A stretch of 64,000 nucleotides of DNA, from assembly GCA_009103225.1 (NCBI GenBank), contig RHPI01000385.1:311898-375897 (forward strand), read 5' to 3'. Source of the DNA: Chlorokybus atmophyticus. Taxonomy: Eukaryota; Plantae; Mesostigma and Chlorokybus algae. Positions 6,145 to 60,161 of this stretch are shown piece by piece. Position numbers and translations under genes: made by a program. The notes beneath the pieces were generated by a model. It did no database searches. It was given only the letters and a program-made list of their open reading frames with translations, and was not told the DNA's origin. The first letter of the stretch is position 1. The number at the start of each line of letters is the position of its first letter.

Positions 6145-8964
<2,820 letters not shown>

Positions 8965-9766
8965 CAAAGAACCAAGACAACCACTGCCAGACACCATATT
9001 GTTGATGACGCAACTTAACGGGGGTTCTGCATCACAGTCACAACTTTTCCGAGTATCATGTACATAGTGTAAGTGTAGGGCATACATGTGGCCACTCGCA
9101 GTTGGCAACTTGCCATCTGCGCCTACTTGTTCAGGTGATGTGGTTGTGGGCTTGGTGGGGTTGGCTGTGGGAACTGCTGTGTACAGTGAATGCAAGTGAT
9201 CATGATACATGCAACATGCATGACACATGCCTTGTTCACCAAGCTCATCATCATGCAATGATGATTTACCACCGGGGTCTACCTATACTAGCCACACGTA
9301 ACTATTGTAACTACTGCCTTCAACCCCCATCAGACATACATGCACGCATTTGCTCATTACTTGTACACAAAAGGTGAGTGTGTGTACGGACGCGCTTCAC
9401 CATGGATGGCAGTGAGTGCTTGCCACTATGCATTGTGCATTGCATAGCACGACATACTCCAGGGGCTTGGGATAGCCCTCTTGCTTATTGCACGCAGAGC
9501 ATATGCACTAGCACTCCCTTATAATCTTATGTGCAGACAAGAGTGATCACATAGTGTGCAATTGTGTACATCACGTTGCTCTTAAGAATGCATGATAACA
9601 CGCAAATATATAATGTCGCCCGTGGCGTCAGCTATTAATTGATGTCACATTACACACAGCGACAGCAGCAAGGGAGTGCTGCAGCACATGCATGATATGC
9701 GTGACTGTGCATCGTGCATGCTACGGTGCAGCTGACGAAACCCTAAAATACGGCAGTGGCGACAGC

Positions 9767-11112
9767 TGTCACGAATTGGGATAAATTGTGACAGACCTCA
9801 CTCATGGTAGTGTCTTTTACTACCATAGCCTAGTGGTCGGGCCCCAATTGTTACAATGGTTTTGGAGCTTGACGTCTCAGGTTCAATTCCCGTAGGGGAC
9901 TGAGGCAGATCCAAGGCAAAAACAAAAATATTTGGGGCGGCTTGCCCTAGGCTGGGCGCGGGATCACGACCTGCGCGCCGAGCCAGTTCAACCTAAGGCC
10001 GCGTGAGCGGTCGCGCTGCGATGGCAGGTCGCGCGGTGAGGATGGCCGTTCGGTCGGTCAGGACCATTCGTTGGCCGGATCCAACAGGCCGCGGGCAGAC
10101 CGATTGTGGTACGGCCGCGAAAACGGCGACGTGGGCTAGTGCCTCATTGGATTATGAGGAACTCATGGGTTAAATTGGGGAGGAATGTCACGAATTGGGA
10201 TAAATTGTGACAGACCTCACTCATGGTAGTGTCTTTTACTACCATAGCCTAGTGGTCGGGCCCCAATTGTTACAATGGTTTCGGAGCTTGACGTCTCAGG
10301 TTCAATTCCCGTAGGGGACTGAGGCAGATCCAAGGCAAAAACAAAAACATTTGGGGCGGCTTGCCCTAGGCTGGGCGCGGGATCACGACCTGCGCGCCGA
10401 GCCAGTTCAACCTAAGGCCGCGTGAGCGGTCGCGCTGCGATGGCAGGTCGCGCGGTGAGGATGGCCGTTCGGTCGGTCAGGACCGTTCGTTGGCCGGATC
10501 CAACAGGCCGCGGGCAGACCGATTGTGGTACGGCCGCGAAAACGGCGACGTGGGCTAGTGCCTCATTGGATTATGAGGAACTCATGGGTTAAATTGGGGA
10601 GGAATGTCACGAATTGGGATAAATTGTGACAGACCTCACTCATGGTAGTGTCTTTTACTACCATAGCCTAGTGGTCGGGCCCCAATTGTTACAATGGTTT
10701 CGGAGCTTGACGTCTCAGGTTCAATTCCCGTAGGGGACTGAGGCAGATCCAAGGCAAAAACAAAAACATTTGGGGCGGCTTGCCCTAGGCTGGGCGCGGG
10801 ATCACGACCTGCGCGCCGAGCCAGTTCAACCTAAGGCCGCGTGAGCGGTCGCGCTGCGATGGCAGGTCGCGCGGTGAGGATGGCCGTTCGGTCGGTCAGG
10901 ACCGTTCGTTGGCCGGATCCAACAGGCCGCGGGCAGACCGATTGTGGTACGGCCGCGAAAACGGCGACGTGGGCTAGTGCCTCATTGGATTATGAGGAAC
11001 TCATGGGTTAAATTGGGGAGGAATGTCACGAATTGGGATAAATTGTGACAGACCTCACTCATGGTAGTGTCTTTTACTACCATAGCCTAGTGGTCGGGCC
11101 CCAATTGTTACA
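9767..11112 (+). mobile_element. Tandem-array TRIM (non-autonomous miniature LTR retrotransposon): 4 LTRs of 89 bp and 3 internal regions of 330 bp
   Basis: 419-bp period (starts 9767, 10186, 10605, 11024). LTR runs TGTCAC...GTTACA; PBS TGGTTTCGGAGC follows each of the first three LTRs (TGGTTTTGGAGC in unit 1); PPT GGGGAGGAA precedes each downstream LTR; identical 5-bp TSD ACAGC at 9762-9766 and 11113-11117; no coding capacity. Confidence 0.93.
10245..10309 (+). promoter_or_regulatory. tRNA-type (type 2) Pol III internal promoter in each TRIM unit (unit 2 given)
   Basis: A box TAGCCTAGTGG 10245-10255 (in LTR) and B box GGTTCAATTCC 10299-10309 (internal), 43 nt apart; TTTT at 10234-10237 immediately upstream. 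Confidence 0.7.
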
Positions 11113-11334
11113 ACAGCGGCTGCCATTGCTGAGCAAGGGTTGGGAAGGTGGCGGTGGCGGTGGCGGGAGGAGGAAGGGAGGAGGGCGTGGGAGTCCGCGA
11201 CGCTGCCGTTGCCGTCCTAGCCAGCAATTGCTAACCAAAGCCCTTGTGGGCAGGTACTGTTCTCTGCATGCTTGCTGTTTGTCTAACGGGGCGGGCTAGT
11301 ACTAGCATAGCATAGCGTAGGTAGCAATAGCCCG

Positions 11335-11899
11335 GTGGTGACTGTTATGTGAGTGGTGAAGGTTATTTTTCATGCATGTCACTCACATTGCCCGCACACC
11401 ATGCATGTTGCCACCGTACCATACCCTTAATATACACACCACGCCCTGGTTGGTCAGCTGGACCGTCCCATGCCAGAGGCAAGCCAGGTTAGCTCGACCT
11501 AATCAGGGAAGCGCCCGGCTACCCTATGCTACTTTGCATAGGGATACATGTAGTGTGGTGCATGCAAATGTTACTACATGTATGGTTGGAGTTTGCGTGC
11601 GATAGTGATAGAGGTGCTTGACTCGGAGCACCTTGCATGCTAGTTAGTACCCACCCCGTTAGCCATACAGGGCAGTGCATCGCCTACGCCAGCCACACAC
11701 CTCACCAGCTACGCGACGGGCATGCGGCGATCACTGCGACTCATGGCGAGCACAAGGGGAGCAGAGAAGTCTGCCCGTGTGGTGGTGCTGGAATACATGC
11801 TAGCCTAGTGGTGACTGTTATGTGAGTGGTGAAGGTTATTTTTCATGCATGTCACTCACATTGCCCGCACACCATGCATGTTGCCACCGTACCATACCC
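11335..11899. repeat. 92-bp direct repeat pair
   Basis: GTGGTGACTGTTATGTGAG...CCACCGTACCATACCC is present at 11335-11426 and 11808-11899. Confidence 0.9.
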
Positions 11900-12135
11900 A
11901 TTATATACGTTGCCATACTAGATAACCAGCTGTTGATTACACGAGCAATGAATTGTAGTTCATGATGCGCAGTTACCCAACGCTGCAGTAAGCATACTTT
12001 TCTTTTGTCCCTAATGAACGTCATCCATAAAAACCGCGAGGTTCGGCCGCTGAATCGTCCTACCAAACTGTAGCGTGTAGCGTTGCACAGAGCCCTGCGA
12101 GGGAGAGTCTCAACGCGTCACCAAAAACCCAAGGC

Positions 12136-13090
12136 ATGACGGGTGACGCTGGTGCAACAACGCGTCACGGTTGCGTCACGCACTTTGGCCGACAGCGACG
12201 GCGGCGGCCGGGGAGCATCTCAGCTGCTGCCACGTGGCGACCGAAGCTCCCCTACTTCATAGTAAGCACTCTCTTGTCGGTATCTCTCTTACATCGTGAT
12301 CCTATGCCTCTTGAACCTTCTCTGTGCAGTTGCCTGTTGACCAAGCGTGGTCTAGGTCACATACGGGTCAAGTGTTGATGCACTGATCTCTACAATACCA
12401 GCTACACAAAGTGCTGCTGTGTCTTCATGGCGTCTTGTTTGTCTTCGAGATTATGTGCTGCTGGCCAAGGTGTGTGCTGTTGGGACAACCCACAGAAGTC
12501 AAGCAAGCTTTTATTGTTCTGTCGTGTTTTGGACTCTCTTGCTTCTGCAAAGGTTACAGACCCGTGCAGTTGAGTAAAGAATTGAACTTGTGTCTTTGCT
12601 TGATTCAGATGGTCATCATGGATTACTATGAGCGTTGTAGTACTCAGCATATGCAGGTCAAGCTCATTCACGCAAACACAGGCCAGCACAGCTGAACGCA
12701 TAGCGTGTCCAGTCTCTGTGTAACCTAATGGCATGTGCTTGATTCAGTGTGTGACACAGCATGTGCTCATGCATGTATATGAACATCTCAGTGAAAGTTG
12801 CAGTCTCAGTCACGCAAACGGCCCCAATCATGCTGTCTGTCCTGAATATGTATGCATACTTGTGTCCAGTCTCTGTGTAACCTCATGGCATGTGCTTGAT
12901 TCAGTGTGTGACACAGCATATGCTCATGCATGTGCATGCACATCTCAGTGAGAGTTGCAGTCTCAGTCACGCAAACGGCCCCAATCATACAAACTTCACA
13001 TGCTGTCTGTCATGAACATGTATGCATACTTGTGTTGACGTGCATACAACTTGCTCCCTGCAGAGTGGCGCTGCCGCTGCCGAGCAGTAG
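12136..13090 (+). CDS. Hypothetical small spliced protein (~100 aa)
   Basis: Five putative exons join in frame through GT-AG introns (…WRPKLPYFI/LPVDQAWSRSHT/ATQSAAVSSWRLVCLRDYVLLAK/MVIMDYYERCSTQHMQ/SGAAAAEQ*). No family recognised. Confidence 0.35.
12705..13035. repeat. ~156-bp tandem duplication (intronic in the hypothetical gene)
   Basis: GTGTCCAGTCTCTGTGTAACC...GTATGCATACTTGTGT occurs twice in tandem. Confidence 0.85.
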
Positions 13091-15863: not shown

Positions 15864-16818
15864 TGTAACGATACCACTCACTTACTTGCTGGGCGGCTTG
15901 GCAAACTTATGCACAAGCACAAGGACTTACTACCGGAAGCCCTACCAGCGTCACTGGTGCAGTACCTTGCAGAGGAAGTCACAGCACCGCACCAAGGAAG
16001 GAGAGGATGACACCAACCTCTCTACTCAGCTCCCACACACTCACACACTCAAGCACACCTCACACACATGTGCAAAGCTGCCACGGACATCACACCCCAC
16101 ATGGGATGAGAGGGAGAGCCCCTTGAACAACTAAACTAGGCACCCCACACACAAGAGTCGAGTATGCACATGCTGAGCTGCCTTAACACATGTTGAGGCC
16201 GTTCCTATACCCTCTCTTTGCTGCTCTCCGACCTAGAACATCCAAGTCCAAGGCTGCATGCCTTGTCATGGCTGCGTTGACCACAACTCATGTCTAGGGC
16301 TGCCACATCAGCCCTTGGACCTCTTTCAACGCCCAAGACTGATCACACATCAGCCTCGGACATTGTAAACGTCCCTAGGCTGGTCACATCAGCCTAGGAC
16401 ATCATACTCATGCATACATATGCATCCTTATGCATACATATGCGCATATGCACACATATGCGCATGCATGCATGTACATGCATACATCTAGTACATACCT
16501 CTCATGCACGCATATGCACTCATATGCGTACATGTGCACACATATGCAAACACATGCATACACATGCGGACATATGCACACATATGTCTCTGTACATCAT
16601 ATGATGTCTCATCGGCTATGATCAGCCCTGTGCTTGCCATCATGCCTTGTGTAGTTCATCATGCTCAAGGCCGCACAGGCTCTAGAGCAGACCTACATGA
16701 GAGCACACCCACAAGCACTACACACGCTTGCGTAGTGTGGGTCCCCACTTGGTCTCATCTTACTTACCACATAAGTAAGGGACAGAGAATGACTTTTGCC
16801 TGCCCTGTGGGCGTGACA
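15864..16818 (-). repeat. 3' LTR of outer element (955 bp)
   Basis: Near-identical to 28844-29864; contains CACATCAGCC subrepeats and a CATATG-rich low-complexity tract. Confidence 0.93.
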
Positions 16819-17069
16819 TTCCTCCCCACTTGCATTGCAACGACCGCGTTGCAAAAGGTGGGACACTAGTCCCGCACAAACCGCAGCCAGGCTGGCCAGG
16901 CCTAACTGAGTGGCAGTGCTTCACGTGAAAGTAGTGCAAGTCGTGGGAGTGACAACCAACTCTGATACTGTGTACCAGTGCATGCGGTGTTGGTATGTCA
17001 CATGAAGATGCTGTGGGCATGTGCACATGCTCCTACAGGTTGAGCACTAGTAGCTCTGAGCACACGCTC

Positions 17070-18914
17070 TCAAGTGGCACCTGTTGATTTGAGCTCATTC
17101 TCAAACTCCTCCAACAAGGCAGCACAGTTTGCCAAGTTGGTTTTCGGCTCCCAGGTGTTATGCTCTTCGCCATAACCAAGCCACTTCACCAAGTATTGGA
17201 TCCAAAAGTTCTTTCTGTACTTTCTGAACCGTTTGCCAACAATGGCCTCGACCTCATACTCGAGATCGCCCTCAACCTCAACTGGAGGGGGAGGGGGTTG
17301 CACTAGACCGTCACTCTTGTACTGTTTCAGCAGTGCTACATGAAACACATCATGTACTTGCATGCTCTTCGGCAAGTCAAGCCGAAAGGCACGGTCACAA
17401 ACACTGTCGGTGATGCGGAATGGACGCAGCCATTTTGGTAGCAACTTGCGTACCCCGCTTGTTTTGAGTCGAATGTTCTTCGAGCTCAACAACACTTCTC
17501 CAACTTGGAGCTCATCTCCAGGCCTACGTTGCCTGTTGGCATACATCTTTTGCCTGTCTTGCGCTGCTTTCAAGCAGTCTTTTGCATGTGCCAACGAGGC
17601 ATGCATGCTCTCTGTGAAGTCTCTAGCCATCGGCACTTTACTGAATGGCTCGACATTCAGAGACATGGGTGTCAACACATGACGACCGTAGTTCAGATAG
17701 AAAGGAGTGCTTCTTAGCGACTCATGCCATGCATTGTTCACAGCGAACTCAGCAAATGGCAGGTACACATCCCAATCATCGAACCTGGGTGATGTGTAGT
17801 GGCGTAGCACATCTTCCAACACCTGATTGACGCGCTGTGTCTGTCCGTCACTCTGTGGATGGTAAACAGTGCTCAAGCTCTGCTTAGTCCCCAAGTACCG
17901 GCACACAGCCTGCCAGAATTGGCTCACGGACTTGGGGTCACGGTCAGACACCAACTCTTTGGGTACACCGTGTGATCTGAACACCGAGTTCACAAAGACA
18001 AACGCAAACTCTTGCGCATCAATGTCTGTGCGACAGGGCTCAAATCTGACCATCTTGGTCAAGCGATCAACAAAGACAAGGACAACACTGTGTCCCTTCT
18101 TTGTAACAAGTAGATCTGTGATCAGATCCATGCTCACACTCTCCCATTGATAGTTGGGAATAGCCAAGGGCTTCAGCAACCTTGTTGGCTTCCTGTGCGA
18201 GGCCTTGTCTCTTTGACAAGTGTCACAACACGCGACATATTTAGATACATCAGCACCCAAGCTCGGCCGCCAATACTGTCTCTGCAGCTGCTTGATGGTC
18301 TTTGCCAATCCCATGTGCCCACTGTACACGGAATTGTGTGCCTCATTCAGACACTCTTGCCTCAAGCCGAGTGCATTTGGCACTATTAATTTGCCCTCAC
18401 GGTACCAGAGTCCCTTGTGACAAGTGATCTTGTCGTCTGCCTGCTTCAGCAACTCAACAAACCATGTGTTAAGTGCATAAGCACTAGGCAAACGCTGTAT
18501 GATGTCTTCCACATCAACGGCCATTGGGTCCTCCCCATTTGGCTCGTGCACTACCAACGGTGCTTCACTGTCTGCTCTCTCGAGCTCAGTTGGCATCTCG
18601 CTGGTCTCTGTTGCCACTGGTGTCTCATTGACAGCTTGCTCATGCACAGATCGCAACTCGAAAATACTGGCACTAGCATCACTTGCTTGTGCCCACCCTT
18701 GGCTTCGTGCACGTGCACGTGTTGTCACTGCCAACAGCAATGGCGAACGGCTCGAAGGGTCTGCCACATTCACTCTTCCTGATCTATAAACCCAGGTAAA
18801 GTTGAATCTAGACAAGTGCTCAGCCCACCTCGCTTGTCTTCTCGACAAGGTTGGTTGGGTCTGAAAGAAAACAAGGGGTTTGTGGTCCGTGATCACACTA
18901 AACCCGCCTTCCAC
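17070..18914 (-). pseudogene. Outer element pol: RNase H end, integrase and chromodomain
   Basis: TDHKPL; H..GH.G zinc-finger and C..C motifs; SMDLIT, SDRDPK, DGQTQR integrase core; GPY/F-like WLRPF; chromodomain YEVEAIV...YLVKWLGY...NTWEP. Confidence 0.9.
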
Positions 18915-20113
18915 CCCTGGATAGCAACGCTACTCTTGTAGCGCATGGACTACCCCCAACAACTCTTGCTCAGTTGTTGTTGTATAATTCCTCTCAGCAG
19001 GAGAGAACTTCTTGCTAGCATAAGCAAGGGGGTGCCCACTCTGGAGCAACACAGCACCAGTGCCTTCAACAGATGCATCACAGTTTACCTCAAAGGGCTT
19101 GGTGAAGTCCGGCAGCTGCAACACAGGCGCTGTCACCAAAGCCTCTTTGATGGACGCAAAAGGCTTCTTGCTGCCTCTGTGACCACCTCCACACGACCTT
19201 GTCACGCAACAGATTAGTGAGAGGGGCAACACGCGATGAGTAACCCAGAATGTATTTGCGGAAGTAGTTGTTCAAGCTTAAGAATGCGCGGCTCGTGCAC
19301 ATTCTTGGGACTAGGCCAAGCCTTGACCTTGGCAACCTTCCTTGGGTCAGGGCGCACGCCCTTCTTGCTCACAATGTGCCCGAGGAACTCTAGTTCCTTC
19401 TTGCAAAACTCGCACTTGGGCATGTAAGCATAGAAACGGTGCGCACGCAGCGTTTCCAACACCTCGCGCACTTGCGCGGCGTGCATGTTAGCATCCTTGC
19501 TGAACACAAGTATATCATCAAGATATACAAGCACTGTTTTCCCGATCAGCTTGTGAAACACACGGTTCATCATAGCTTGAAAGGTGGCTGGCGCATTCGT
19601 CAGACCAAAAGGCAGCACTTTGTACTGAAAGTGTCCCACAAGCGTTCTGAACGCTGTCTTGGGCACATCTTCCGGTGTGATCCAGATCTGATGGTACCCA
19701 CTGATGAGATGCAAGGAGCTAAACACTGAGGCACCGCTCAGTTGATCAAGCAAATCATCTATCCTTGGCAGCGGATACCTGTTCTTGATGGTCAGCTTGT
19801 TCAAGGCCCTATAGTCTACGCACATGCGTAGCCTGCCGTCCTTCTTGTGTACGAAAAGAATGGGTGCTCCGAAAGGAGAGCTGCTTGGCTCAATCAATCA
19901 CTTCTCAAGCAAGGCCTTGATCTGCCCCTCCATGTCCGCATACTCAGATGGACTCAGCCTATACATAGGTCTGAACGGAGGCTGCGCATCAGACTTTAAA
20001 GGGATCGTATGCCATACGTCCCTCTCAGGTGGCAATGCAGGCTGTTCAGCTTGAAACACATTAGAAAATTCAGACAACAGATCTTCAAGGGCCGTGTCTG
20101 GTGGCTTGCCACC
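18900..20113 (-). pseudogene. Outer element pol: reverse transcriptase and RNase H, with frameshifts and stops
   Basis: IEPSSSPFGAPILFV, RMCVDYRALN, YLDD, EFLGH, CDAS..G.GAVL. There is an in-frame stop (LLEK*LIEP) and frameshifts near 19230 and 18920. Confidence 0.92.
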
Positions 20114-21289
20114 TGTAACGGAGTGCTACCTCTATAGAGGTTCCCCGCCCTTATTTAGGATTAAATAAGGGTCCCAACGGGTATATACAGCCAATTAAGC
20201 CGTATTAGGGCCGTTAACCTAGTGTTAAGGCCCTAATGTAGTGTTACTTAACTGTAACACTGATATGGACATGAGACTCATGTCTCATGTCGATATCAGC
20301 TGTATGGCGGCTCTGCTAAACGCAGCGGCCGCCATAGCCAGGGGATCTTCTGCTCCGGCAGTGGCCCCTGGCGGCGGCGGTGACGGCGTCGTGGCTGGCG
20401 GCGGTGTTGGGGTAGGGGATTAAAGGGGGCGGTAGCACCCCTCTTTACATTGGTATCGGAGCACGGGCGTGAAGAGCCTGTGGAAGGGGCGGCGGCAGGC
20501 GGCAGGCGACTGCGGCGGCAGGCGACTGCGGCGGCAGGCGACTGCAGCGGCGGCAACTTGTGGTAGTTATTAGGTGGTAGTTGTTGTTGTGATTGTTATT
20601 ATTAAAACGCTGTTGCTGGTGTAGGCTAGTTACCTAGCCCTGCCTTGCCTTGCCTTGCATAGCCTAGCTTGCCCTGCCCTAGCCTAGCCGAGCTTGTTAG
20701 CTTGCGTGTAGGGGAGGCGGCCACTCAGGCAGCCTTCCCCCTCAGTATTGCATGCCCAGCACATCACATAGTGATTTATATATATATAACCACTTGTGTG
20801 TGCTTGTGCTGGCCACCACGTGGATTCGTGGTGGTGTAAAGGGTTTGACCCCCCTTGTGAGACAGTCCGGTGGCAACATCGGCTGTCGTTACCGCCAGTC
20901 AGTGCGGTGAGGCCGCCAGAGTCATTCTGTGCGGCCAGTATCAGACTCACAACTCACAACTCGCTGATATCACCCTGTAGGGTTGATTCAACGAGATTTT
21001 GGCACCCTGTGTGTCAATTACAATTGTGGGTTGAGTTGAGTTGTACAAAGTGCAAACTTTGACAAGCTGTAACTTGTGAACCGCCGCGTGAATTCGCGTG
21101 CGGTTTGTTTCTAAGCAAGTGTCTAGTTGAGAAGTGTGTGGGGAGCTCTTGTTTGAGCTGTATACTCCACGTTACACACTTGAAACTTGACGAGACAACA
21201 TCAAGTGATTTTGACACTTTTGCAGTGCACAACTCGTGTGTTTGTGCACTTGCAAACTTCAACTATTGACGGCTTATATTCTTGGGCAG

Positions 21290-22762
21290 ATGTCTGACCA
21301 AGGAGGGGACGACGTGGAGAAGTCCACATCATATGAGCCATCAAGTGAAGAGGAAGTGAATTACTCTGACACGAGTGAGAGCTATCAGCTGACCGTCAGT
21401 GAGAAGGAGGGAGACAAGCAAGAGAGCGATGCTTCTCCCGACCAGTCTGCTCAGAGTGTACCAGTTGCAGTAAACGCTGAAATGGCACCACCTGCAGTTG
21501 ACTCTCAGAGTGTCATTGGCGGGGCAATTGAGAAGTATGCCCAGGAGCGCAAGGCTCTGCTTGATGCCAACCCACAGCTTGGCAAGGAAACATGGGATGC
21601 ATGGGCTCAGAAGGTTCGTGATGGCTATGAGACGGACTTTGTCACACTTCCTCGCGCAAGCAAGGAGATGGTGATCCGCATGCTCGAGCACGAGCTGACG
21701 AACAATGTTCCGCCACTCGTGCGCGGTGATCCGAAGGTGGCTGCTCTGATGGCTGTTTACGATAAGCCTCCCCCTTACCAAGGCAAGCGAATGGCGTTTG
21801 AGGCTTTGGCCAACTTGGGAGTGGAAACCTCACAGCGTTGCAAGGACGTGTTCTGGTACTTGGGACCTAACTTGGAAGACAAGTTGACTGGCCGAGTGCA
21901 GTTGACGGCACGCCTCGATGCTATGCAGGCTGAGTTGGTGGCGCTGCGCCAACAGGTGGCGGGTGCTACTTCAGCAGCTGGAGCATCAGCGGGGCTGCCG
22001 GTTACAGCACTGAATAAGCCTGAGAAGTTCAAGCCCAACGGCAGCGTCAGTATCCACGACTGGGTGGTAACTGTTGAGCACTATTTAACAGCATTGAGAC
22101 GCCCCGTTGGTGAACACATTGCTGTTGCTGAGTTGCTCATGCCTTCTGACGCTCTCGCCGAGTGGGCGAGGCAGACACAGGACGGTGCTACCAAAACAGT
22201 GGAGGCACTGTTTCAGTTCCTGACGGAACGCTATGGTGGCATGGACCCGGCTACTCAGGCTCGTAACAAGCTCAGCAAGTTGCGACAGAATGGTCGGGCG
22301 GCTTCAGCCTATCTGCAAGAATTCCAGGCATTGGTGGGTCGTGCCAACAGCGGCCTCATGCCTATTGACAAGGCCGAGCAGTTTGAGTTGTACAAGCGCG
22401 GCTTGGATGCGCGTGTGCGCGATCAGCTGCAGTACAACACGGCAACGGGACTTCCTTGGGTTCCTGAAGACTTGGCCCAGCTGCAGAAGCTGAGCGTGTA
22501 TCTGTACAGTGATGACACGGCGGTGCAGGAAAAGGCACATATGGCAGCTGCGGCTAAGCCGCACGGGGTGGGAGGGAAGCGTTACCCTCAGCCGAGTGCG
22601 CACACGGCAAAGAAGGCGAAGACATTCACGCCTCCTACCGGTGGCACATCTGCTGGTGGTGGTACACCCGCTGCGGCTCGCACCTGTTACGTATGTCACC
22701 AGCCGGGTCACATTGCGAAGAACTGCCCCGCCAAGAAGGGCAAGGCCAAGAAGGTTGAATAG
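21290..22762 (+). CDS. gag: Gag of inner element (acidic N-terminal extension, retrotransposon capsid, CCHC knuckle)
   Basis: KPEKF...QARNKLSKLRQ capsid-like region; CYVCHQPGHIAKNC zinc knuckle; stop TAG. Confidence 0.93.
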   Translation: MSDQGGDDVEKSTSYEPSSEEEVNYSDTSESYQLTVSEKEGDKQESDASPDQSAQSVPVAVNAEMAPPAVDSQSVIGGAIEKYAQERKALLDANPQLGKETWDAWAQKVRDGYETDFVTLPRASKEMVIRMLEHELTNNVPPLVRGDPKVAALMAVYDKPPPYQGKRMAFEALANLGVETSQRCKDVFWYLGPNLEDKLTGRVQLTARLDAMQAELVALRQQVAGATSAAGASAGLPVTALNKPEKFKPNGSVSIHDWVVTVEHYLTALRRPVGEHIAVAELLMPSDALAEWARQTQDGATKTVEALFQFLTERYGGMDPATQARNKLSKLRQNGRAASAYLQEFQALVGRANSGLMPIDKAEQFELYKRGLDARVRDQLQYNTATGLPWVPEDLAQLQKLSVYLYSDDTAVQEKAHMAAAAKPHGVGGKRYPQPSAHTAKKAKTFTPPTGGTSAGGGTPAAARTCYVCHQPGHIAKNCPAKKGKAKKVE

Positions 22763-25700
22763 GATTACGCCGTGATTAATGTAGGTGTGGTTGATAGCCA
22801 GTTGCTTGAGATGCAAGCAGCAAGCTGGTTTGATGATCTGTCTCAAGTGCATGTAATGACACATGCATGGCAAGCACATGACAAGCTGCCACTCTTTGAT
22901 GTTAGAAAAGTGGAAGAGAATGCTTGTGTGCTGGTACATGTGGAGTTCAACATGCTTACCGATGTGTTGCATGCATTGACTGAGTTGCAAAATAAGCACA
23001 GAACCTTGAGTATGATGGTGATGGTGCCAAAGTATCATGGCCCATGGTTAAAACATACTCGGGGAGGGTCTGTGTTGAAGCAATTCAGCAAGCGTGAAAC
23101 AGGGACAATACGGTTGTCAGCCATATTGATCAACCCTCGCATTAGTCACGGACTCTTGGCTACGTTTCAAGGACGGGTGGTACCTCTGTTGTGGACATTT
23201 AGTGGCACAATGCAGGGTGTAAACAGTTTGTTCTTGATTGACACTGGTGCAACACACAACTTCGTTGAGGAACAATGGGTTGTGCGCAACAAGATAGCGT
23301 GTAAACCCTCAGCATTTTCAGCTGCCGGTGCGGGGGGTGCGTTGCCAGTGAAAGGGGAAATAAAAATGAAAGTAAAGATTGGTAATTATCATGCCACTCT
23401 TACTTTCATAGTGGTATCCATCGACATATCAGGTGTTGATGTGGTATTAGGACAGGAATGGCAGGAAAATGTCAAAATGACATTGGATACTGGCGCACGT
23501 TTGTGCACGGTAAAGAAAGGTCGTAAGCGTGTAACATTGTCTGTGAAAGGGTCACATAGCTTGGACCACAAGCAGCCCGACCCTGCGCTACTCACTGCAC
23601 TGCAAGTGAAACGTGCGTTACGCAAAAACACACCGGCTTTTCTGGTACACTTGACGTCGTCGGACGACTTTGTGCCGGAAAACACAGAAGGTGTTGCAGA
23701 CATCATTGAGAAGTATCAAGATGTGTTCTCAGATGAATTGCCAGGCTTACCTCCTGATCGAGGTGTCGGACACACAATACCACTAATTCCTGACAGTGAA
23801 CCTCCGTTTCGGCCTATATATAGGCTGAGCCCCCGAGAGAGGGGGGAAATGGAAACTCAAATCAAAGAGTTATTGGAAAAGGGATTGATTGAACCGAGTT
23901 CTTCACCCTTTGGCGCGCCCATCTTGTTTGTGATGAAAAAGAATGGAAAGCTGCGCATGTGTGTGGATTACCGTGCTTTGAACAAAATCACGGTAAAGAA
24001 TCGATACCCGTTGCCCCGGATTGATGATGTGTTTGATAAACTGTCGGGAAATGCGTACTTTAGTACGTTGGACTTGACAAGTGGGTATCATCAAATCCGG
24101 ATTCATCCTTCTGATGTTTACAAGACAGCATTCAGAACACCTTCGGGCCATTATCAATACAAAGTGTTGCCTTTTGGATTGACTAATGCGCCGGCAGTGT
24201 TTCAGAAGGAAATGAATAAGATTTTTGGTGGCATACTTGGCAAGTATGTTATGGTTTACTTGGATGACATCATTGTCTTTAGTAAAACCAAGGAAGAGCA
24301 TAAGCAGCACTTGGAAGCGGTGTTCGCCTTGCTGCGTACACATCGCTTGTTTGCCAATCTTGCGAAGTGTGACTTCTGCAAGACGGAGTTGCCATTCTTG
24401 GGGCACATTGTGAGCGGTGCGGGTGTGAAACCTGACCCTCGCAAAGTGCAAGTTGTAAAGGATTGGCCTCAACCTAAGAATATCCATCAGCTGCGATCAT
24501 TCTTGGGATTGGCAAACTACTTTCGCAAGTTTATGATGGGGTACTCCACAGTAGTGGTGCCTTTGACAAAACTGTTGCGAAAAGATGCTCCATTTTTATG
24601 GACAGCTGAACAAGAAGCTGCTATGCAACAGGTGAAGCTAGCTTTGACTTCTGCTCCAGTGTTGGCATTGCCAAACTGGGACAAGCATTTCACTGTGGTT
24701 AGCGATGCGTCCACCCTTGGGTGTGGTGCAGTACTGTTGCAAGATGGCAGACCATGTGCTTATGAGAGTAGGAAATTCATCCCAGCAGAGGTAAATTACA
24801 CTACCACCGAGCAAGAGTTGCTTGGTATAGTACATGCTCTGGAAACATGGCGCTGTTACTTGGAGGGGGTTCAGTTCATAGTGGTGACTGATCATAATCC
24901 ATTGGTGTATTTCTCAACACAGCAAAACTTGTCACGAAGGCAAGCTCGCTGGAATGAGTTTCTGTCTCGGTTTACCTTTGAGTGGGTATACCGGCCAGGC
25001 AGAACTAATGTTGCTGATCCTCTGAGTCGTTGTCCATCATTGTTGGCAGCTATGCGTGCGCAATTGCTTGCGACGCGCGGTACATTGCCACCGGATGATG
25101 AGTTTGTGCAAGCTGTTGTGCAAGGGTATGCTTTTGACCCATGGTTCTCGTCAGAGGACAACGTGCAAAAGCTGAGCAAACGAGACAACTTGTATTATGT
25201 GGGCACCAGCTTGGTAATACCTGACCATGCTGGATTGCGTGCGAAATGCATAGCTGATGTACACGATCCACCGTACGCTGGGCACTTTGGCAGTCGCAAG
25301 ACTGTTAAAGCAGCGCAACAGTTGTATTAATGGCCATCGTTGCCTGTTGACGTAAAACGGTATGTGGACACGTGTGACAAGTGTCAACGTGATAAGCCGT
25401 TACGTCAGAAACCAGCTGGTTTGCTGCGACCATTGCCTATTCCTGATGGCAAATGGGAAAGTGTGAGTATGGACTTAATTACTGAGCTCCCAGAGACAGC
25501 ATTAGGTCACACTGCGGTTGCAGTTTTTGTGGATCGTTTGACAAAAATGGTCCACATTGTCCCTTGTCGCACGGAGATAGGCTCCCGTGAGTTGGCGATG
25601 GTTTTTGTCGCGTCTGTGTTCAAGTTGCATGGCTTGCCCCGCAACTTCGTGTCAGATCGCGATCCGCGATTTGTGGCTCAGTTTTGGAAGTCGCTATGCA

Positions 25701-26533
25701 GCTTCTTACACATTCAGCAGAACATGAGCACTGCTTACCATCCACAGACGGATGGTCAGACAGAACGCGCCAATCAAGTGATTGAGGAAACCATCCGGCA
25801 TTATGTGAGCCCGAATCAGAGTGATTGGGATATTTATCTCCCAATGGCTGAATTTGCGATCAATAATGCATGGCAAGAGAGCGTGCAGGAGACTCCGTTC
25901 TTCTTGAATTACGGAGTGCATCCACTAAGTCCTGCGAACATTAAGTTGCCCGCTACTGACGTGACTCGCGTACCTGCAGCGCGCGAGATGGCTTTGGCCA
26001 TGCAGGATAGGTTAGCGTTGGCAAAAGACTGTCTGCGCGCAGCGCAAGACAGACAAAAAGCCCACGCTGATGTGCATCGTAGAGAGGCCACCTACGATGT
26101 GGGCTGTTCGGTGCTTTTAAGTACCAAAAACGTATCCATCAAGGGAGTGGGTACCCGCAAGTTTTTCCCTCGCTGGATAGGCCCTTTCAAAGTGACTGAT
26201 CGGGTCGGCACTCACGCGTATCGTTTGGACTTGCCAAAGTCGATACGCATTCACAATGTGTTTCACGTGAGTGTACTGAAACCATACCGTTCTGACGGTC
26301 GGGTTCAACCTCCTCCACCCCCCGTTGCAGTGGATGGCGACGATACTTTCGAGTATGAGGTGGAAGCAATCCTGAGTCACCGTAAGCCTCGACGCGGACG
26401 CGCGCCGTCTTACTTGGTGAAATGGAAAGGGTATGGTGTTGAGCACAACACGTGGGAGCCCGAAAGGAATCTTACCAACTGCCAAGAGATTCTTCGGAGG
26501 TACTGGAGTGTTGTGTCCACACGCGGACGGTAA
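22763..26533 (+). CDS. pol: Pol of inner element (Dam-like domain, protease, RT, RNase H, integrase, chromodomain), with one internal TAA at 25328-25330
   Basis: LIDTGA protease; YLDD RT; SDAS RNase H; SMDLIT/DGQTER integrase; WIGPF; chromodomain YEVEAIL...YLVKWKGY...TWEP. Same frame as gag. Confidence 0.93.
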
Positions 26534-26995
26534 AAGGGTGCTGGCAGACATCTTTACCGCTTCGGCCCTGGTTCTCTCACTGCTTTGGTTCTCGGTGCTC
26601 ATGGTGGGGCTTTGCTAACCCTTCAATGAGGACATTGAAACCTAAGTCGGGGGGAATGTAACGGAGTGCTACCTCTATAGAGGTTCCCCGCCCTTATTTA
26701 AGATTAAATAAGGGTCCCAACGGGTATATACAGCCAATTAAGCCGTATTAGGGCCGTTAACCTAGTGTTAAGGCCCTAATGTAGTGTTACTTAACTGTAA
26801 CACTGATATCGACATGAGACATGAGTCTCATGTCGATATCAGCTGTATGGCGGCACTGCTAACGCAGCAGCCGCTATAGCCAGGGGATCTTCTGCTTCGG
26901 CAGTTGCCCCTGGCGGCGGCGGTGTGGTCGGCGTGGCTGGTGGTGGTGTTGGGGTAGGGGATTAAAGGGAGGAGGTAGCACCCCCTCTCCTTACA

Positions 26996-27351
26996 TTGGT
27001 ATCGGAGCGCGCCAAACAAGTGATTGAGGAAACCATCCGGCATTATGTGAGCCCGAATCAAAGATATTTATCTCCCAATGGCTGAGTTTGCGATCAATAA
27101 TGCATGGCAAGAGAGTGTGCAGGAGACTCCGTTCTTCTTGAATTACGGAGTGCATCCACTGAGTCCTGCGAACATTAAGTTGCCCGCTACTGACGTGACT
27201 CGCGTACCTGCAGCGCGCGAGATGGCTTCGGCCATGCAGGATAGGTTAGCGTTGGCAAAAGACTGTCTGCGCGCAGCGCAAGACAGACAAAAAGCCCAAG
27301 CTGATGCGCATCGTAGAGAGGCCAATTACGATGTGGGCTGTTCGGTGCTTT
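26996..27351 (+). mobile_element. Internally deleted tandem copy of inner element (PBS fused to integrase C-terminal fragment), truncated at an N
   Basis: The 3' LTR is followed by TGGTATCGGAGC and then sequence matching ~25768-26113; it ends at the N at 27352. Confidence 0.85.
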
Positions 27352-27352
27352 N

Positions 27353-28487
27353 ACATTGTGCCCATCTGCATGCAAGGTCACACGACCTCGACCTTTGCGT
27401 ACACTGCAAAGTTTTGTGTCCACGTCTGTGCGCAAGCCACATGCTTGCTCCCAGTGGCTGCCAACAATGACATCCACGCCTGGCACCTCTACTGGGATGA
27501 CCAAGAACTTGAGCTGAGCATGATAGCCTTGCACACGCACAGACAAGCGTACAACTCCCCGCACGGGGATCTTAAGCTTGTTTAAGGCAACAACCATGTC
27601 ATCACACTTGCTGACACGAATGCCTAAGCGTCGCACAAGAGATTCACTCACGAAGTTCTCAGGTGTGCCCGTGTCTATCATCAAGATGCACGGCACATGC
27701 GCAACAGAAGCCTTGAACAACCTAGTCAAGTGAAGAGTACTTACCTCATGGATGGCAGGGGGGTCATACAACACACGCATCTGCCCCTTACCTAGCTTGA
27801 CCTCTCTCAGGACCTGCATGCCTTTAACAAAGCTGGTCCACAACCCAGGACGCTTGGGTACAACCACGCATGCACTTGTGTTGTGCGCACTCTTGCTCTT
27901 GCAATCCACATAGTCACTATGTGCACGGTGCTTGAGCATGTTTGACAACTCGTCAACAGGTGCATTGAGCAAGACACACTTGCCTGCACAGTAGGCTGCA
28001 TGAATTGAGTATCTACCTGTACACCCAACTCGTTCTCCCACACAGCGACATTGCATGGTTGGGGAAGGCGTGACATCAAGTCACTGAAAGCACATTGCGT
28101 ATTTACGTCCACATAGCAGCTAGCCATTGGCAATCCCTGTTGTACACATGGCTTCTTGCTCTCTTCATGTCCCTCATACATGAGAGCATGGCCCCGAGCA
28201 GCATCAGCTTCAGCTTCACAGAGCTGTGCTTCACGGCTACGCTTCCGCTCTCGGTGGTTCTGTACACTTGCATCGACAGATGCACCAACATGTCCCTTAC
28301 TTGGGATTGCACAGTCAACGATGTCACTTGACCGTTGCCATTAAGCTATGTTGGCCTCGTGTTGTTGCTGTAACGCTGTTACCTGCTCACACAACGTGGC
28401 AACCAAAGTGGTAAGCTGTCGGGTGGTCTTAGCAACATCATTGCCCCAAGATACCTCCTCTCTTGCTGTATGCTCTTGCTCAGCCAT
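27353..28487 (-). pseudogene. Outer element 5' coding region: short N-terminal segment, Dam-like domain and aspartic protease
   Basis: MAEQEHTAREE..., one in-frame stop and one frameshift; GKCVLLNAPV...TSACVVVPKR; MIDTGTPENFV protease. Confidence 0.8.
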
Positions 28488-28843
28488 TGCCACAAAGGTT
28501 AGGGCCAACACCACAAGGTGAAGTCCCTGTAACGTATGCACTCACGCGCACACGCGCGCACACACGCGCACACGCGCAGCTGGTACAGCAACAAGCCAAT
28601 GCGTGTGTAATGCTGTGTATGTGCAGCAAGAACACACAACCAATGCTCAAATCAGCGTGTAGAACGACCCACACCGTGCATGCAAGTGTGCACGCAGCTG
28701 GACGCACCAACTAGCATGCACAATCAGCTCAAAACCCTGCCATGTAGTGCGTGCAAGCAAAGAATTCAACGCACGCACGGTGCAGCAAGTGCATCAGCTG
28801 ATGGGCAAGCATGCAAGGCTTTGAATGCAAGCTCCGAGTCCAA

Positions 28844-29864
28844 TGTAACGATACCACTCACTTACTTGCTGGGCGGCTTGGCAAACTTATGCACAAGCAC
28901 AAGGACTTACTACTGGAAGCCCTACCAGCGTCACTGGTGCAGTACCTTGCAGAGGAAGTCACAGCACCGCACCAAGGAAGGAGAGGATGACACCAACCTC
29001 TCTACTCAGCTCCCACACACTCACACACTCAAGCACACCTCACACACATGTGCAAAGCTGCCACGGACATCACACCCCACATGGGATGAGAGGGAGAGCC
29101 CCTTGAACAACTAAACTAGGCACCCCACACACAAGAGTCGAGTATGCACATGCTGAGCTGCCTTAACACATGTTGAGGCCGTTCCTATACCCTCTCTTTG
29201 CTGCTCTCCGACCTAGAACATCCAAGTCCAAGGCTGCATGCCTTGTCATGGCTGCGTTGACCACAACTCATGTCTAGGGCTGCCACATCAGCCCTTGGAC
29301 CTCTTTGAACGCCCAAGACTGATCACACATCAGCCTCGGACATTGTAAACGTCCCTAGCCTGGTCACATCAGCCTAGGACATCCCACACATTATCCTTGG
29401 ACGCTGTGAACGTCCTTGGCTGGTCACATCAGCCTAGGACATCATACTCATGCATACATATGCATCCTTATGCATACATATGCGCATATGCACACATATG
29501 CGCATGCATGCATATACACGCATACATCTAGTACATACCTCTCATGCACGCATATGCACTCATATGCGTACATGTGCACACATATGCAAACACATGCATA
29601 CACATGCGGACATATGCACACATATGTCTCTGTANTCTGTACCTCACATGATGTCTCATCGGCTATGATCAGCCCTGTGCTTGCCATCATGCCTTGTGTA
29701 GTTCATCATGCTCAAGGCGCACAGGCTCTAGAGCAGACCTACATGAGAGCACACCCACAAGCACTACACACGCTTGCGTAGTGTGGGTCCCCACTTGGTC
29801 TCATCTTACATACCACATAAGTAAGGGACAGAGAATAATTTTTGCCTGCCCTGTGGGCGTGACA
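28844..29864 (-). repeat. 5' LTR of outer element (1021 bp)
   Basis: Matches 15864-16818, plus roughly one extra CACATCAGCC subrepeat unit. Confidence 0.93.
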
Positions 29865-48812: not shown

Positions 48813-49043
48813 GTGTGCATGACGAGAGTAAGCCCCATTGAGTTGGTGGTTTGCCTCCCCACTGGCGCACATCTCTGTGCTATGGCGAGCTGCTGCACGG
48901 GAATGTCTCGGGTCGCAACCCGAAACCCCTGACTGCAGGTCCTGCCCTTCAGGGATGGCTCTTTCTGCCTCATCGCCCGGGGACTTTCTCTCGGTCATCG
49001 ACCTAACCGCGTGCACCTTTCGAAGTGCTCAAAAGCATCACAC
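48813..49043 (-). ncRNA. RMRP: RNase MRP RNA
   Basis: The minus strand has CR-I GAGAAAGUCCCCGGG, a P8 stem GGC-AGAAAGA-GCC with GARAR loop, GAGACAUUCCC, CR-V ACCAACUCAAUGGGGCUUACUCUC, complementary 5'/3' ends (GUGUG-AUG / CAUGCACAC) and a U-rich end. Ends are approximate. Confidence 0.88.
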
Positions 49044-56278: not shown

Positions 56279-58084
56279 TCATTTGTGATACAAGAATGCA
56301 AGCCCGAAAATCACGAATCCACCCATCTGCAAACAAACGGGCCATGTGCGAAACATGAATAACTCATTAGTGACCACTGTGGACGCACAAAACCGCAACA
56401 GGCAAACATCGTTTTTCACAGGCACCGCGTACCATAGAAAATGCGGAAGCGTAATAGGGGAATGCAGATGGTATGAACCTCTCATACTCATTGTGCCGGA
56501 ACGGCCGCACTGGCACCTGGGTACTCAGCTGCAGGTGTGTGTACCCAACCCGCCGGTAGTCAAGAACGAACTTGAACACGCCGTACACATCAGGGGATTC
56601 AAAGGTTGTGAAGAACTTCCCTTTGCCATCCTGCGACAGCGTGGTGCGAATGTACGGGTCCAACATGACAAACTCCAGCTGCACGTCATCCGCCCGGAAA
56701 GGCCGCCATGCACGCTTTGCGGCATCCCACTCTTCAATTTGCACTTCATAATGAATACGGTCGTTGATGCGATACATGGACGGCGAATGCGAACCCTCTG
56801 GATCGAATGCTCGCCTGTGCACGACGCTGTGCGCCCGCAACCAACCCCGCTCGTGAAATGCCCACTTTGTCAACCCGACAGCAAACTTCTCGTTGCTCGA
56901 CTTGGGTGCAGTGAACAGCGCATCTGAGAAGAGGTCAAGCGAGCCGGACACAATCACGCGAGCTCCATTGCGGGCCTGCATGGCCGTCACGAGGGCAATG
57001 GAGGACCCGGCCAGGGTAGGAGCGCGCGCGACGGGTGTGGCATCCTCTGAGTGCGACCACGAGTAAGCTGTTGGCGAGGCCGAAACCACTGTCACAACGA
57101 GTTCACTTTCTGGGCTAATACTCTGAGCAATGCCACGGAACAACACCGGTGAAGTCAAGGACTCTCCGAGCAAGCGCGCTGCAACCGATGAAGGGTCTGC
57201 TGCCAGCAGCGTGTGGTCCGCCTTGGAAGCCTCAGCTGCATGGTCCACGACAATATACCCGTCTTCATCCAAGTCCACGCCGCACTCGGCAACAACGTCC
57301 CGAACCCACTCACTCGCACCCGGCGCCAGAGCGATGATGGCATCGCCGCCTCCATCCACGAACGCAAGGACGTCAGCAACCTCAATGGTCGACTCTGTGG
57401 TGGGGGCGAAAACCACCAGCTTGTCAAACTGAGCCTCCCCATGCGTGAAGAGCTCCACACTCGAATCATCTGCCTGCAATGCACACATGTTTAATGCGCA
57501 TGTCAATGCACCTGACGAGGGAAGCACCACTCTGTATACTAGCTCTAAAAGCAGTTATTGGCATGCATGACAACCCTGTAGCCAAAGTTATCAAATCAGC
57601 TCAAGCTGCATGGCATGCATCCCCCAGGAACTGCCAGCATGCTAGATGAAGACGTTGGATTGCACGTGCATGCAATGCATGTGCGGTCTAGTGTATGAAG
57701 GAAATGCGTACCGTAGCCACATGCAATGCTTCGATTCCTATGCATGCACATGCACATGGGAGACGCTGTACAGCTTGAAGCAATGAGTTGATCACAACAG
57801 GACGATGGGCATTTAGGCGTAGAAGCTCGGCTGAGCCCCATGCGTCTTACCGTTGTGATGGTGAGGCTGTAGCCTGCCTGCTTGAGGGCGGCAAGGTACT
57901 TGGAGTGTGTGGCCTGGACCGACAGGTCGTCGGCAAGGACAAGCACCCTCCTACCCGTCGTAGCCGGCTCAGCGGCGGTAGAGGCGGATACCCATCTACC
58001 CACTCCACCAACAGCCAGCAGCACCGCCAGCAGCAGCACGGCCGTCACGGGCCTCGCCGCCCCCGCCATCGACGGCGACGCCAT
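56279..58084 (-). CDS. OST48: Oligosaccharyltransferase 48-kDa subunit (OST48/WBP1/DDOST)
   Basis: Signal peptide; THSKYLAAL; MQARNGARVIVSGSLDLFSD; QLEFVMLDPYIR; PDVYGVFKFVLDYRRVGYT; PVRPFRHNEYERFIPSAFPYYASAFSM; C-terminal FLYHK. Confidence 0.97.
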
Positions 58085-59106: not shown

Positions 59107-59449
59107 ATGGGAAAGAATACTGCTCCGCCCAAGATCTACATCATCTACCACTCGATCTGGGGGCACGTCCGCACCTTGGCCCACCAGGTGGCTGAGGGGG
59201 TCAAAGAGGCAGGCGGCGAAGTCCATCTCTTCCAGGCGAGTTGCATGCATGTAGACGAAGGGTTTTGGGAAGTGCTTGACTGTCGGATGCGTGCCTGTAT
59301 AGGTGCCTGAGACACTACCAAAAGAGGTCCTTGAGAAGGTAGGCGCAGGTTGCTCTAAGTGCTGCAACTAGAAACTGGCAGCGTTGCTACAAGTCATTGT
59401 GCGCTGCATCAATGTTTGGTTAATTACAGCAAGCCATTACACAATGCAA

Positions 59450-59493
<44 letters not shown>

Positions 59494-60090: not shown

Positions 60091-60161
<71 letters not shown>

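Follow-up and report, generated by a model that had tools for sequence, protein, structure and literature searches.

A stretch of 64,000 nucleotides of nuclear DNA from the streptophyte alga Chlorokybus strain CCAC 0220, to the whole of which we refer as the window, contains among the features collected in Table 1 a tandem array of a terminal-repeat retrotransposon in miniature (TRIM) at positions 9767–11112. The array alternates four long terminal repeats (LTRs) with three internal regions (int) of 330 nt each, in the layout LTR-int-LTR-int-LTR-int-LTR, or L4I3; the LTRs, of 89 nt, show no mismatch among one another, and no further copy of them was found in the window. Tandem Repeats Finder (TRF) returned one array (9767–11113) with a period of 419 nt, 3.2 copies, and 99% matches, while a single LTR-int-LTR element comes to 508 nt. 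Every LTR begins with TG and ends in CA (TGTCAC..GTTACA), a polypurine tract (PPT) directly abuts each following LTR, and the primer-binding site (PBS) TGGTTTCGGAGC agrees at 11 of its 12 positions with the tRNA-Met-type PBS TGGTATCGGAGC, a 12-mer described as complementary to tRNA-Met in a paper on a plant pararetrovirus (PMC13269303). The four identical LTRs and the target-site duplication (TSD) ACAGC on both sides bear out what an original prediction, made from the letters of the window, had reported, and the joint presence of TSD, PBS, and PPT upholds its identification of the element as a tandem TRIM. The coding capacity is nil, the longest stop-free stretch in the TRIM being one of 64 codons.

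Table 1. Features of the window, in order of position. T4, run of four T residues; Pol III, RNA polymerase III; U3 and U5, LTR portions upstream and downstream of the proposed junction; PR, protease; IN, integrase.
Feature	Position	Strand	Remarks
Agmatine-deiminase-like gene exons (PAD_porph)	7671–8900	+	End ~850 bp upstream of the TRIM, same strand
Left TSD ACAGC	9762–9766	+	Read directly; same as 11113–11117
LTR 1, 89 nt, TG..CA	9767–9855	+	Holds TATA-like ATAAAT, hairpin with T4 9815–9818, A box 9826–9836
Internal region 1	9856–10185	+	Mutated PBS, B box 9880–9890, PPT GGGGAGGAA 10177–10185, three unit-1-specific transitions
Mutated PBS of unit 1, TGGTTTTGGAGC	9857–9868	+	Extra T4 at 9860–9863
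LTR 2	10186–10274	+	Proposed U3 10186 to ~10237, proposed U5 ~10238 to 10274
TATA-like ATAAAT	10200–10205, in every LTR	+	28–38 nt upstream of the proposed start; putative role
Hairpin ATGGTAGT / GTCTTTT / ACTACCAT	10223–10245	+	Read directly and from the LTR fold
T4, candidate Pol III terminator	10234–10237; also 9815–9818, 10653–10656, 11072–11075	+	Hairpin loop, 7 nt before the A box
A box TAGCCTAGTGG	10245–10255; starts also 9826, 10664, 11083	+	Perfect match to tRNA consensus TRGCNNAGTGG
Internal region 2, non-coding, G+C-rich, strongly structured	10275–10604	+	PPT 10596–10604
PBS TGGTTTCGGAGC	10276–10287; unit 3 copy 10695–10706	+	1 nt past the LTR
B box GGTTCAATTCC	10299–10309; also 9880–9890, 10718–10728	+	Perfect match to consensus GGTTCRANNCC
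LTR 3	10605–10693	+	Identical repeat
Internal region 3, same sequence as region 2	10694–11023	+	PPT 11015–11023
LTR 4	11024–11112	+	A box present, without B box downstream
Right TSD ACAGC	11113–11117	+	Read directly
Outer Ty3/gypsy chromovirus	15864–29864	-	Pfam: PR, RNase H, IN, chromodomain; LTRs 28844–29864 and 15864–16818
PPT/LTR-start junction of outer chromovirus, TGGGGAGGAATGTCACG	16812–16828	-	17/17 nt identical to TRIM junction
Inner chromovirus	20114–26995	+	LTRs ~336 nt, termini TGTAACG..TTTACA
LTR-end/PBS junction of outer chromovirus, GTTACAtTGGacTCGGAGCTTG	28828–28849	-	TRIM has GTTACAaTGGttTCGGAGCTTG; 19/22 identical
RNase MRP RNA gene (Rfam RF00030, 61 bits)	48816–49030	-	Then TTTCTTTT; T4 immediately before 5′ end
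OST48 gene, single-exon stretch	56367–57530	-	100% identical, exon ends excepted, to protein 9144 of the JGI Chlat1 annotation; assigns the window to Chlorokybus CCAC 0220

Each of the three units carries an A box within the LTR and, on the same strand, a B box that lies 11 nt past the PBS and 25 nt past the LTR end, the gap between the two boxes being 43 nt; both motifs match their consensus perfectly, as had been noticed at first sight together with the tRNA-gene spacing. When the window is shuffled with its dinucleotides preserved, 128 kb of strand are expected to contain 1.71 A boxes and 0.55 B boxes. These values imply that an A box with a B box 30–60 nt behind it would arise about 2e-4 times in a window and about 1.5e-6 times in an element of 419 nt; in that estimate the three A/B pairs of the array count as one event. 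That A and B boxes with the geometry of a tRNA gene should have come together here as a product of chance would, on this arithmetic, be very unlikely. A strict motif scan detected no further B box in the 64-kb window and only one further A box, at 11801.

The LTR contains in addition, in the loop of a hairpin just upstream of the A box, the only plus-strand run of four or more T residues per unit in units 2 and 3 (10234–10237 and 10653–10656), a position for which the earlier reading likewise holds; the antisense strand has three T runs per unit. The RNase MRP RNA gene, the single authentic Pol III gene of the window, ends in TTTCTTTT, and for that reason we regard a T4 as a credible terminator in this alga.

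The surroundings of the A box have the geometry of a tRNA 5′ half when read directly: the heptamer ACTACCA is followed by T8, A9, and a D-arm-like hairpin, GCCT/AGTGGTC/GGGC, with a stem of 4 bp and a loop of 7 nt (10247–10262). Directly upstream stands ATGGTAGT, the exact complement of the first eight nucleotides, and then G, TC, and TTTT, so that the hairpin of the LTR reads as a putative 3′ acceptor strand, discriminator G, TC trailer, and T4 terminator, followed by the 5′ acceptor strand and U8. The likeness to a tRNA, which is weak beyond the boxes and this 5′ half, would reside in these two and in the acceptor-like stem, as in many short interspersed elements (SINEs).

Two further observations concern the same part of the element. 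As a single strand, the LTR (10186–10274) folds into a cloverleaf-like four-way junction of -27.5 kcal/mol, closed by the imperfect terminal inverted repeats TGTCACGAATTGGG / CCCAATTGTTACA; within this closing stem are three hairpins, one of which is the D-arm-like hairpin of the A box. Past the B box, the segment 10324–10354 consists of CAGATCCA, an A-rich tract AAAAACAAAAACA (10337–10349), and then ..ACA TT TGGGGCGG. The octamer CAGATCCA occurs also in Helenus-1_SMo, a TRIM from Selaginella, where it comes shortly after the tRNA-like portion and near the LTR end. The stretch comprising CAGATCCA and the A-rich tract could be a relic of an older and longer LTR with a different PBS, a relic of a SINE-like tail, or a coincidence.

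A protein word search with the internal open reading frame (ORF) at 10422–10592 had a sole match, P0121, a 60-aa gene model on another scaffold (Chrsp94) of jgi Chlat1 that is 86% identical to that ORF and extends across the PPT into the LTR, of which it covers 18 nt (IGEECHELG before the stop), thus ending short of the boxes. This predicted protein, the sole trace of a relative, shows that the TRIM family has at least one further copy, diverged by at least roughly 5%, in which the PPT and the start of the LTR are conserved. The same gene model polarizes one of the differences within the array. Units 2 and 3 are identical, and unit 1 departs from them by three transitions, at 9863, 9929, and 10066, two of which fall on CpG sites. 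Because P0121 has V where unit 1 has I, the A at 10066 is derived and the G ancestral; the change at 9863 is a CpG transition of that same kind, and unit 1 decayed by the three transitions after the array had been formed. The transition at 9863 converts the PBS into TGGTTTTGGAGC and generates a new T4, in keeping with the earlier remark that unit 1 has a damaged PBS and a premature T4.

Other searches for relatives were negative within their respective scopes. Neither the 56-aa internal ORF nor P0121 is on record in the contig collection by exact look-up; a protein search with a 64-codon antisense stretch over the hairpin, A box, PBS, and B box was without a match; a 36-aa frame over the T4, A box, PBS, and B box retrieved with HMMER only unrelated repeat proteins among 1.84 billion representatives; and metagenome scans gave zero matches both for a 22-mer across the PPT/LTR start and for a degenerate AGTGG..PBS..B-box pattern.

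The window offers a candidate for the enzymes that the TRIM does not encode. The outer chromovirus, with LTRs of ~1 kb and the flanks GATAT/AATAT, is split by an inner chromovirus, which is a second related lineage with the canonical PBS TGGTATCGGAGC at 20451–20462, the PPT GGGGGGAA, and ORFs for gag, PR–reverse transcriptase (RT)–RNase H, and IN–chromodomain in three consecutive frames. The TRIM and the outer element have the PPT GGGGAGGAA in common, agree closely at both junctions of LTR and interior, and in U5 and PBS share the match GTTACA.TGG..TCGGAGCTTG; LTR termini, PBS, and PPT in common with an autonomous element of the genome are what marks a non-autonomous derivative of a Ty3/gypsy chromovirus, and all three are found in the comparison with the outer element (15864–29864). 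Outside the two junctions, the similarity of the TRIM interior or LTR body to that element does not rise above that of shuffled sequences. The TRIM is best read as a putative parasite of the outer chromovirus lineage that would have kept only the sites that RT and integrase must recognise, and this lineage most likely would supply Gag, RT, and integrase in trans.

Behind the 3′ LTR of the inner chromovirus, the segment 26996–27353 has a second PBS (26997–27008) and then a 347-nt copy of integrase sequence (27005–27351) that repeats 25763–26117, and ends at an N (27353). What stands there is a tandem of the autonomous element that was truncated, or else a join made in assembly.

We consider that Pol III-driven replication of the TRIM is plausible, with the chances for and against about evenly matched, a judgement drawn from one locus in a short-read assembly; to the same degree, the element may belong functionally with the TRIMs that have a Pol III promoter (TRIMp3), in a layout different from theirs, with its replication template made by Pol III. 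In this mechanism, TFIIIC would recognise the A box of U5 together with the B box that the leader holds 43 nt farther on, and TFIIIB would be placed upstream, over the TATA-like ATAAAT; plant tRNA genes use TATA-like upstream sites. The original prediction had the polymerase start right after the T4 of one LTR and stop at that of the next. The position of the T4 is coherent with the unit-length transcript thus envisaged, but a start right after the T4, at 10238 and with no terminal repeat (R) in the RNA, is not the most natural one. Because genes of the tRNA type usually start a few to about 12 nt (3–12) upstream of the mature 5′ end, a start at ~10226–10235, which lies within the T4 or ahead of it and would fall on a purine (A10228 or G10231, for example), would be likelier than one at 10238. 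Pol III would pass the first T4 at +4 to +10, transcribe U5, the PBS, the B box, the internal region, the PPT, and U3, and terminate once it reached the T4 in the LTR that follows, which course would yield an RNA of ~419–430 nt with a terminal redundancy of 0 to ~10 nt: a start at ~10226–10235 would leave a repeat of 5–10 nt (..GUCUUUU) at both ends, and a start at 10238 none.

The LTR would then consist of a U3 ending in ..AUGGUAGUGUCUUUU joined to a U5 starting with ACUACCAUAGCC.., with the junction of terminator and start in the hairpin loop, and such an LTR would match the reverse-transcription product of an RNA that has a tRNA-like acceptor stem, discriminator, trailer, and U run at its ends. 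That the same T4 might be leaky at first and effective later could, speculatively, be accounted for by pairing: when the T4 is reached for the second time, the nascent AUGGUAGU has in the 5′ ACUACCAU of the same RNA a partner with which it can pair just before the U run, and at the first passage this partner does not exist yet. That RNA structure aids Pol III termination is disputed. Since both boxes would be transcribed, a promoter placed across the LTR/PBS junction would pass to each copy; since the LTR itself does not hold the B box, only an LTR with a leader behind it would act as a promoter, and LTR 4 and solo LTRs would automatically be silent; and unit 1 would be inactive through the extra T4 in its PBS. 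Taken in all its particulars, that is, a unit-length Pol III RNA bounded by the acceptor stem, a split type 2 promoter, a U3/U5 junction that doubles as terminator and start, a redundancy of at most 10 nt, and a first T4 passed with the second one obeyed, this account of the template is tentative, and we think it rather unlikely to hold in full. Two additions to it were dropped: self-priming of the Tf1 type, for which the RNA 5′ end and the PBS have by eye only 5 nt of complementarity, and an origin of the B box as a read-through copy of the primer tRNA, since such a copy would be antisense and the B box is in the sense orientation. A third, in which the B box would give the T arm of tRNA-Met an extended site to pair with, was likewise set aside.

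Several points weigh against a Pol III template. One T4 per 419 nt is ordinary, composition-matched shuffles having none in 51% and one in 36%, and the scarcity of T runs was rejected as evidence, since shuffles so often give none or one. The T loop fits that of a tRNA, but the T stem pairs at only three of five positions. The RNA from 10238 to 10656 folds with -184 kcal/mol (z = -5.4), its ends paired by the hairpin arms and its tail being GUCUUUU; 42 circular permutations of the 419-nt RNA, one every 10 nt, nevertheless fold equally well, so that the folding energy was discarded as a pointer to the phase in which the RNA starts. The PBS of the TRIM has its one mismatch to the canonical form; and, if the polymerase starts before the T4, it is required to pass that T4 once.

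The remaining objections bear also on the alternative that the element is an ordinary TRIM, whose template RNA polymerase II (Pol II) would make, starting at the TATA-like motif of the LTR or reading on from the agmatine-deiminase-like gene that lies upstream; the boxes would be what is left of a captured tRNA or SINE fragment, or a near-match handed down by the parent chromovirus, with no role in replication. Most TRIMs are thought to use Pol II (PMC10853983); the ATAAAT stands ~30 nt before the hairpin and fits a Pol II start at the same place equally well; and the array lies in the same orientation as the PAD_porph exons, ~850 bp downstream of the last of them. The tRNA detectors are also without a call at the TRIM: ARAGORN at its default calls no tRNA in the window, the Rfam tRNA model has no match there at E<=10, a complete cloverleaf tRNA gene at the TRIM is called by neither, and relaxed ARAGORN, also with introns allowed, is at noise level, with 50 calls per 64 kb. 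Moreover, the Pol III RNA would have nearly no R, and a terminal redundancy that is nil or very short would make first-strand transfer problematic. Finally, the outer chromovirus has TAAGTGAGTGG in U5 and CATTCAAAGCC after its PBS, loose counterparts of the A and B boxes at comparable places; if these are homologous, the boxes of the TRIM could be near-matches made perfect and the chance argument would be weaker. The alignment of the TRIM boxes to TAAGTGAGTGG and CATTCAAAGCC is not robust, and the homology to the chromovirus outside the junctions is not significant. Against a Pol II template speak also the boxes themselves, perfect and in the right order, strand, and spacing, which is very improbable by chance; the acceptor-like stem, discriminator, trailer, and T4 that directly precede the 5′ half; and the mere ~25–50 nt left for R and U5 after the putative start, in which there is no AATAAA or TGTAA. 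On balance this alternative is a possibility to be reckoned with, if on the improbable side.

A different doubt concerns the array rather than the polymerase. For the assembly of Chlorokybus CCAC 0220, SOAPdenovo (k=85) and GapCloser were run on short reads of Illumina and BGI origin, and mate-pair libraries of up to 20 kb were used (PMC7027972). In such an assembly the TRIM element and its flanks are credible, but the number of identical 419-nt units is not secure because the reads are short. The three-unit array could, wholly or in part, be a product of the assembly, the true locus being a single TRIM or an array of other length and the unit-1 variants coming from another copy: the sequencing was of the short-read Illumina type, units 2 and 3 differ nowhere (100% identity) along 419 nt, a length greater than k, and the stray N at 27353 marks another repeat junction in the window. 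We hold this to be possible but somewhat doubtful, since both flanks join the LTR ends cleanly with a matching 5-bp TSD, the mate pairs reach up to 20 kb, and a tandem arrangement is frequent among TRIMs, with confirmation by PCR in other cases (PMC4717578); the doubt, besides, touches the number of units only, not the element or its boxes.

Tandem TRIMs have in fact been recorded for 129 subfamilies in 35 of 43 plant genomes, whatever the type of promoter (PMC4717578), and the earlier suggestion that read-through by Pol III favours arrays is left without support. Since such arrays are common in plant genomes, the present one is ordinary and carries no information on the polymerase. Unequal crossing-over between LTRs, or template switching in reverse transcription, would yield it, and the single TSD fits the insertion of a multimer no better than it fits an insertion followed by unequal crossing-over.

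The boxes might also be real signals for TFIIIC and Pol III with another role, in which they would give rise to a short transcript of Pol III or make up a boundary element that TFIIIC binds, the TRIM being no more than their carrier. In the Helenus consensus sequences compared, the LTR has a T4-type run after the tRNA-like part, so that short transcripts are possible for the class; Kojima leaves the function of Helenus open (PMC10886601); and in unit 1 the extra T4 (9860–9863) would give a transcript of ~25–35 nt. From the A box to the next LTR, on the other hand, the intact units have no T run, which makes a short product unexpected, and a template RNA agrees with where the T4 lies, at the proposed boundary of U3 and U5; we judge such other roles improbable. 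Lastly, the idea of a plain 419-bp satellite or segmental tandem duplication that merely resembles an LTR element, under which TRF's call of a simple 419-nt tandem repeat could be filed, is effectively refuted by an array that begins exactly at TG and finishes exactly at the CA of an extra 89-nt partial unit, with a 5-bp direct repeat as its flanks, a PBS 1 nt past each LTR, a PPT against each LTR, and both junctions matching chromoviruses of the window.

In the neighbouring sequence, a local duplication of 108 nt (11328–11435 and 11801–11908; 96% identity) lies 200–700 bp downstream of the array. Its second copy has the only other strict A box, TAGCCTAGTGGT, with 12 nt identical to the TRIM LTR, and its first copy has TAGCCCGGTGG at that place; no further similarity to the TRIM was found in the 108 nt, and the match is probably due to chance. 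An unrelated non-coding tandem duplication of 157–170 bp, with ~2 copies at 95% identity, follows at 12705–13035. Farther away, at 59359–60423, a low-GC stretch has ORFs open in several frames on both strands and holds two perfect (CT)n microsatellites (59453–59493 and 60091–60158).

Among known systems, the retrozymes resemble the Chlorokybus TRIM as non-autonomous LTR elements in which a device in the LTR, acting at the level of the RNA, sets its unit length, a device that is putative in Chlorokybus; Rfam at E<=10 gave no match to a hammerhead or other ribozyme, and for want of a hammerhead match at that threshold the element is not classed as a retrozyme. With the SINE2 class the TRIM shares a tRNA-related 5′ part and inherited internal A and B boxes, which in SINEs act as a Pol III promoter, and in Chlorokybus, too, an A-rich tract, AAAAACAAAAACA, follows the tRNA-like part. 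SINEs, however, are mobilised by long interspersed elements and lack LTRs, PBS, and PPT, whereas in Chlorokybus the LTR end and the PBS stand between the two boxes; LTR, PBS, PPT, and the 5-bp TSD rule out a tRNA-derived SINE. Tandemly arrayed TRIMs (TA-TRIMs) such as Zma-SMART and Wukong, common in plants, have the same structure of the LnI(n-1) type, with shared LTRs and one TSD (PMC4717578, PMC4528315), which in the assembly takes here the form L4I3. The motifs of a small-RNA promoter are absent from those families and present in the Chlorokybus TRIM; should these prove inert, the locus would amount to an ordinary TA-TRIM.

Cassandra has, like the Chlorokybus TRIM, a tRNA-Met-type PBS (TGGTATCAGAGC) and forms tandem arrays, which are frequent in it (PMC7215508). 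It possesses an internal Pol III promoter and terminator, whereas in the Chlorokybus TRIM the use of Pol III is our proposal; its R is short as well, 18 nt by Kojima's summary (PMC10886601). The promoter of Cassandra, in contrast, is of type 1 (5S; box A, IE, box C) and wholly contained in the LTR, which is not so in Chlorokybus, and the family is known from ferns and angiosperms, not from algae. The window has no 5S_rRNA match at the Rfam gathering score or at E<=10, by which result identity with Cassandra is excluded.

The closest likeness is to Helenus, and the statement made in the original prediction that no tRNA-type TRIM was known has been overtaken, for Kojima described in 2024 such elements from rust fungi, six animal phyla, and one plant, Selaginella, and grouped Helenus, Ajax, and Cassandra as TRIMp3 (PMC10886601). 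Their use of Pol III, too, was deduced from sequence only (PMC10886601). Helenus and the Chlorokybus TRIM are alike in being non-autonomous, in their 5-bp TSD, and in their A and B boxes, the Helenus consensus TRGCY..YGG and GGTTC being matched at this one locus by TAGCCTAGTGG and GGTTCAATTCC. Helenus-1_SMo of Selaginella moellendorffii has a 120-nt LTR, an 85-nt interior, the PBS TGGTATCGGAGC, and a 5-bp TSD in 325 bp (PMC10886601), compared with 508 bp in Chlorokybus, so that both are very small. The two also share the TGGTATCGGAGC type of PBS, a G/A run at the end of the PPT, and the lack of any obvious terminator other than a T4-type run, and a comparison by eye only finds boxes, PBS, and the 8-mer CAGATCCA in common. 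Tandem arrays, as found in Chlorokybus, are noted for one Helenus family, LTR-11_DR (PMC10886601).

The differences lie in the layout. Helenus has by definition the whole tRNA-like sequence, and hence both boxes, in the LTR, whereas the Chlorokybus TRIM has only the A-box half there and carries its B box farther on, in the leader, 25 nt past the end of the LTR. A similarity to a tRNA, which is another mark of Helenus, is seen here in the 5′ half and the T loop but not by the tRNA detectors. In the Helenus consensus sequences compared, the T run follows the tRNA-like part in the LTR and R would amount to ~80–90 nt; in Chlorokybus the T4 stands upstream of the A box and R would be 0 to ~10 nt. 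The likely helper is of the Ty3/gypsy type in Chlorokybus, and Kojima inferred Copia for fungal Helenus families. The internal regions of some of the latter (Helenus-2_PGr-I, LTR-1_PTrit-I, Helenus-3_PSt-I) hold B-box-like motifs, e.g., GGTTCAATTCC and GGTTCAATCCC (PMC10886601), and for this reason a B-box-like sequence outside the LTR is not unique to Chlorokybus; those families, unlike the Chlorokybus TRIM, also keep the full tRNA-like part in the LTR.

Two traits thus set the element apart from known TRIMp3: the putative promoter is split between U5, which has the A box, and the stretch past the PBS, which has the B box, and the T4 comes ahead of the A box. If the boxes work, an LTR retrotransposon can do without having the whole promoter inside its LTR, and the proposed transcript, if true, sets a lower bound on the terminal redundancy needed for first-strand transfer. 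Such elements also seed genomes with tRNA-like promoter boxes, which may mislead the annotation of tRNAs and SINEs. The TRIMp3 kind would, moreover, reach the earliest-diverging streptophyte algae, and with a concrete Ty3/gypsy candidate for a helper, there being no known helper of Cassandra (PMC10886601). The Chlorokybus element, which would work like a TRIMp3 and is not a Helenus by definition, is a variant within that kind and not a new category; if the reading is true, LTR retrotransposition driven by Pol III would have here a third, independent solution beside those of Cassandra and Helenus, and for streptophyte algae it would be the first.

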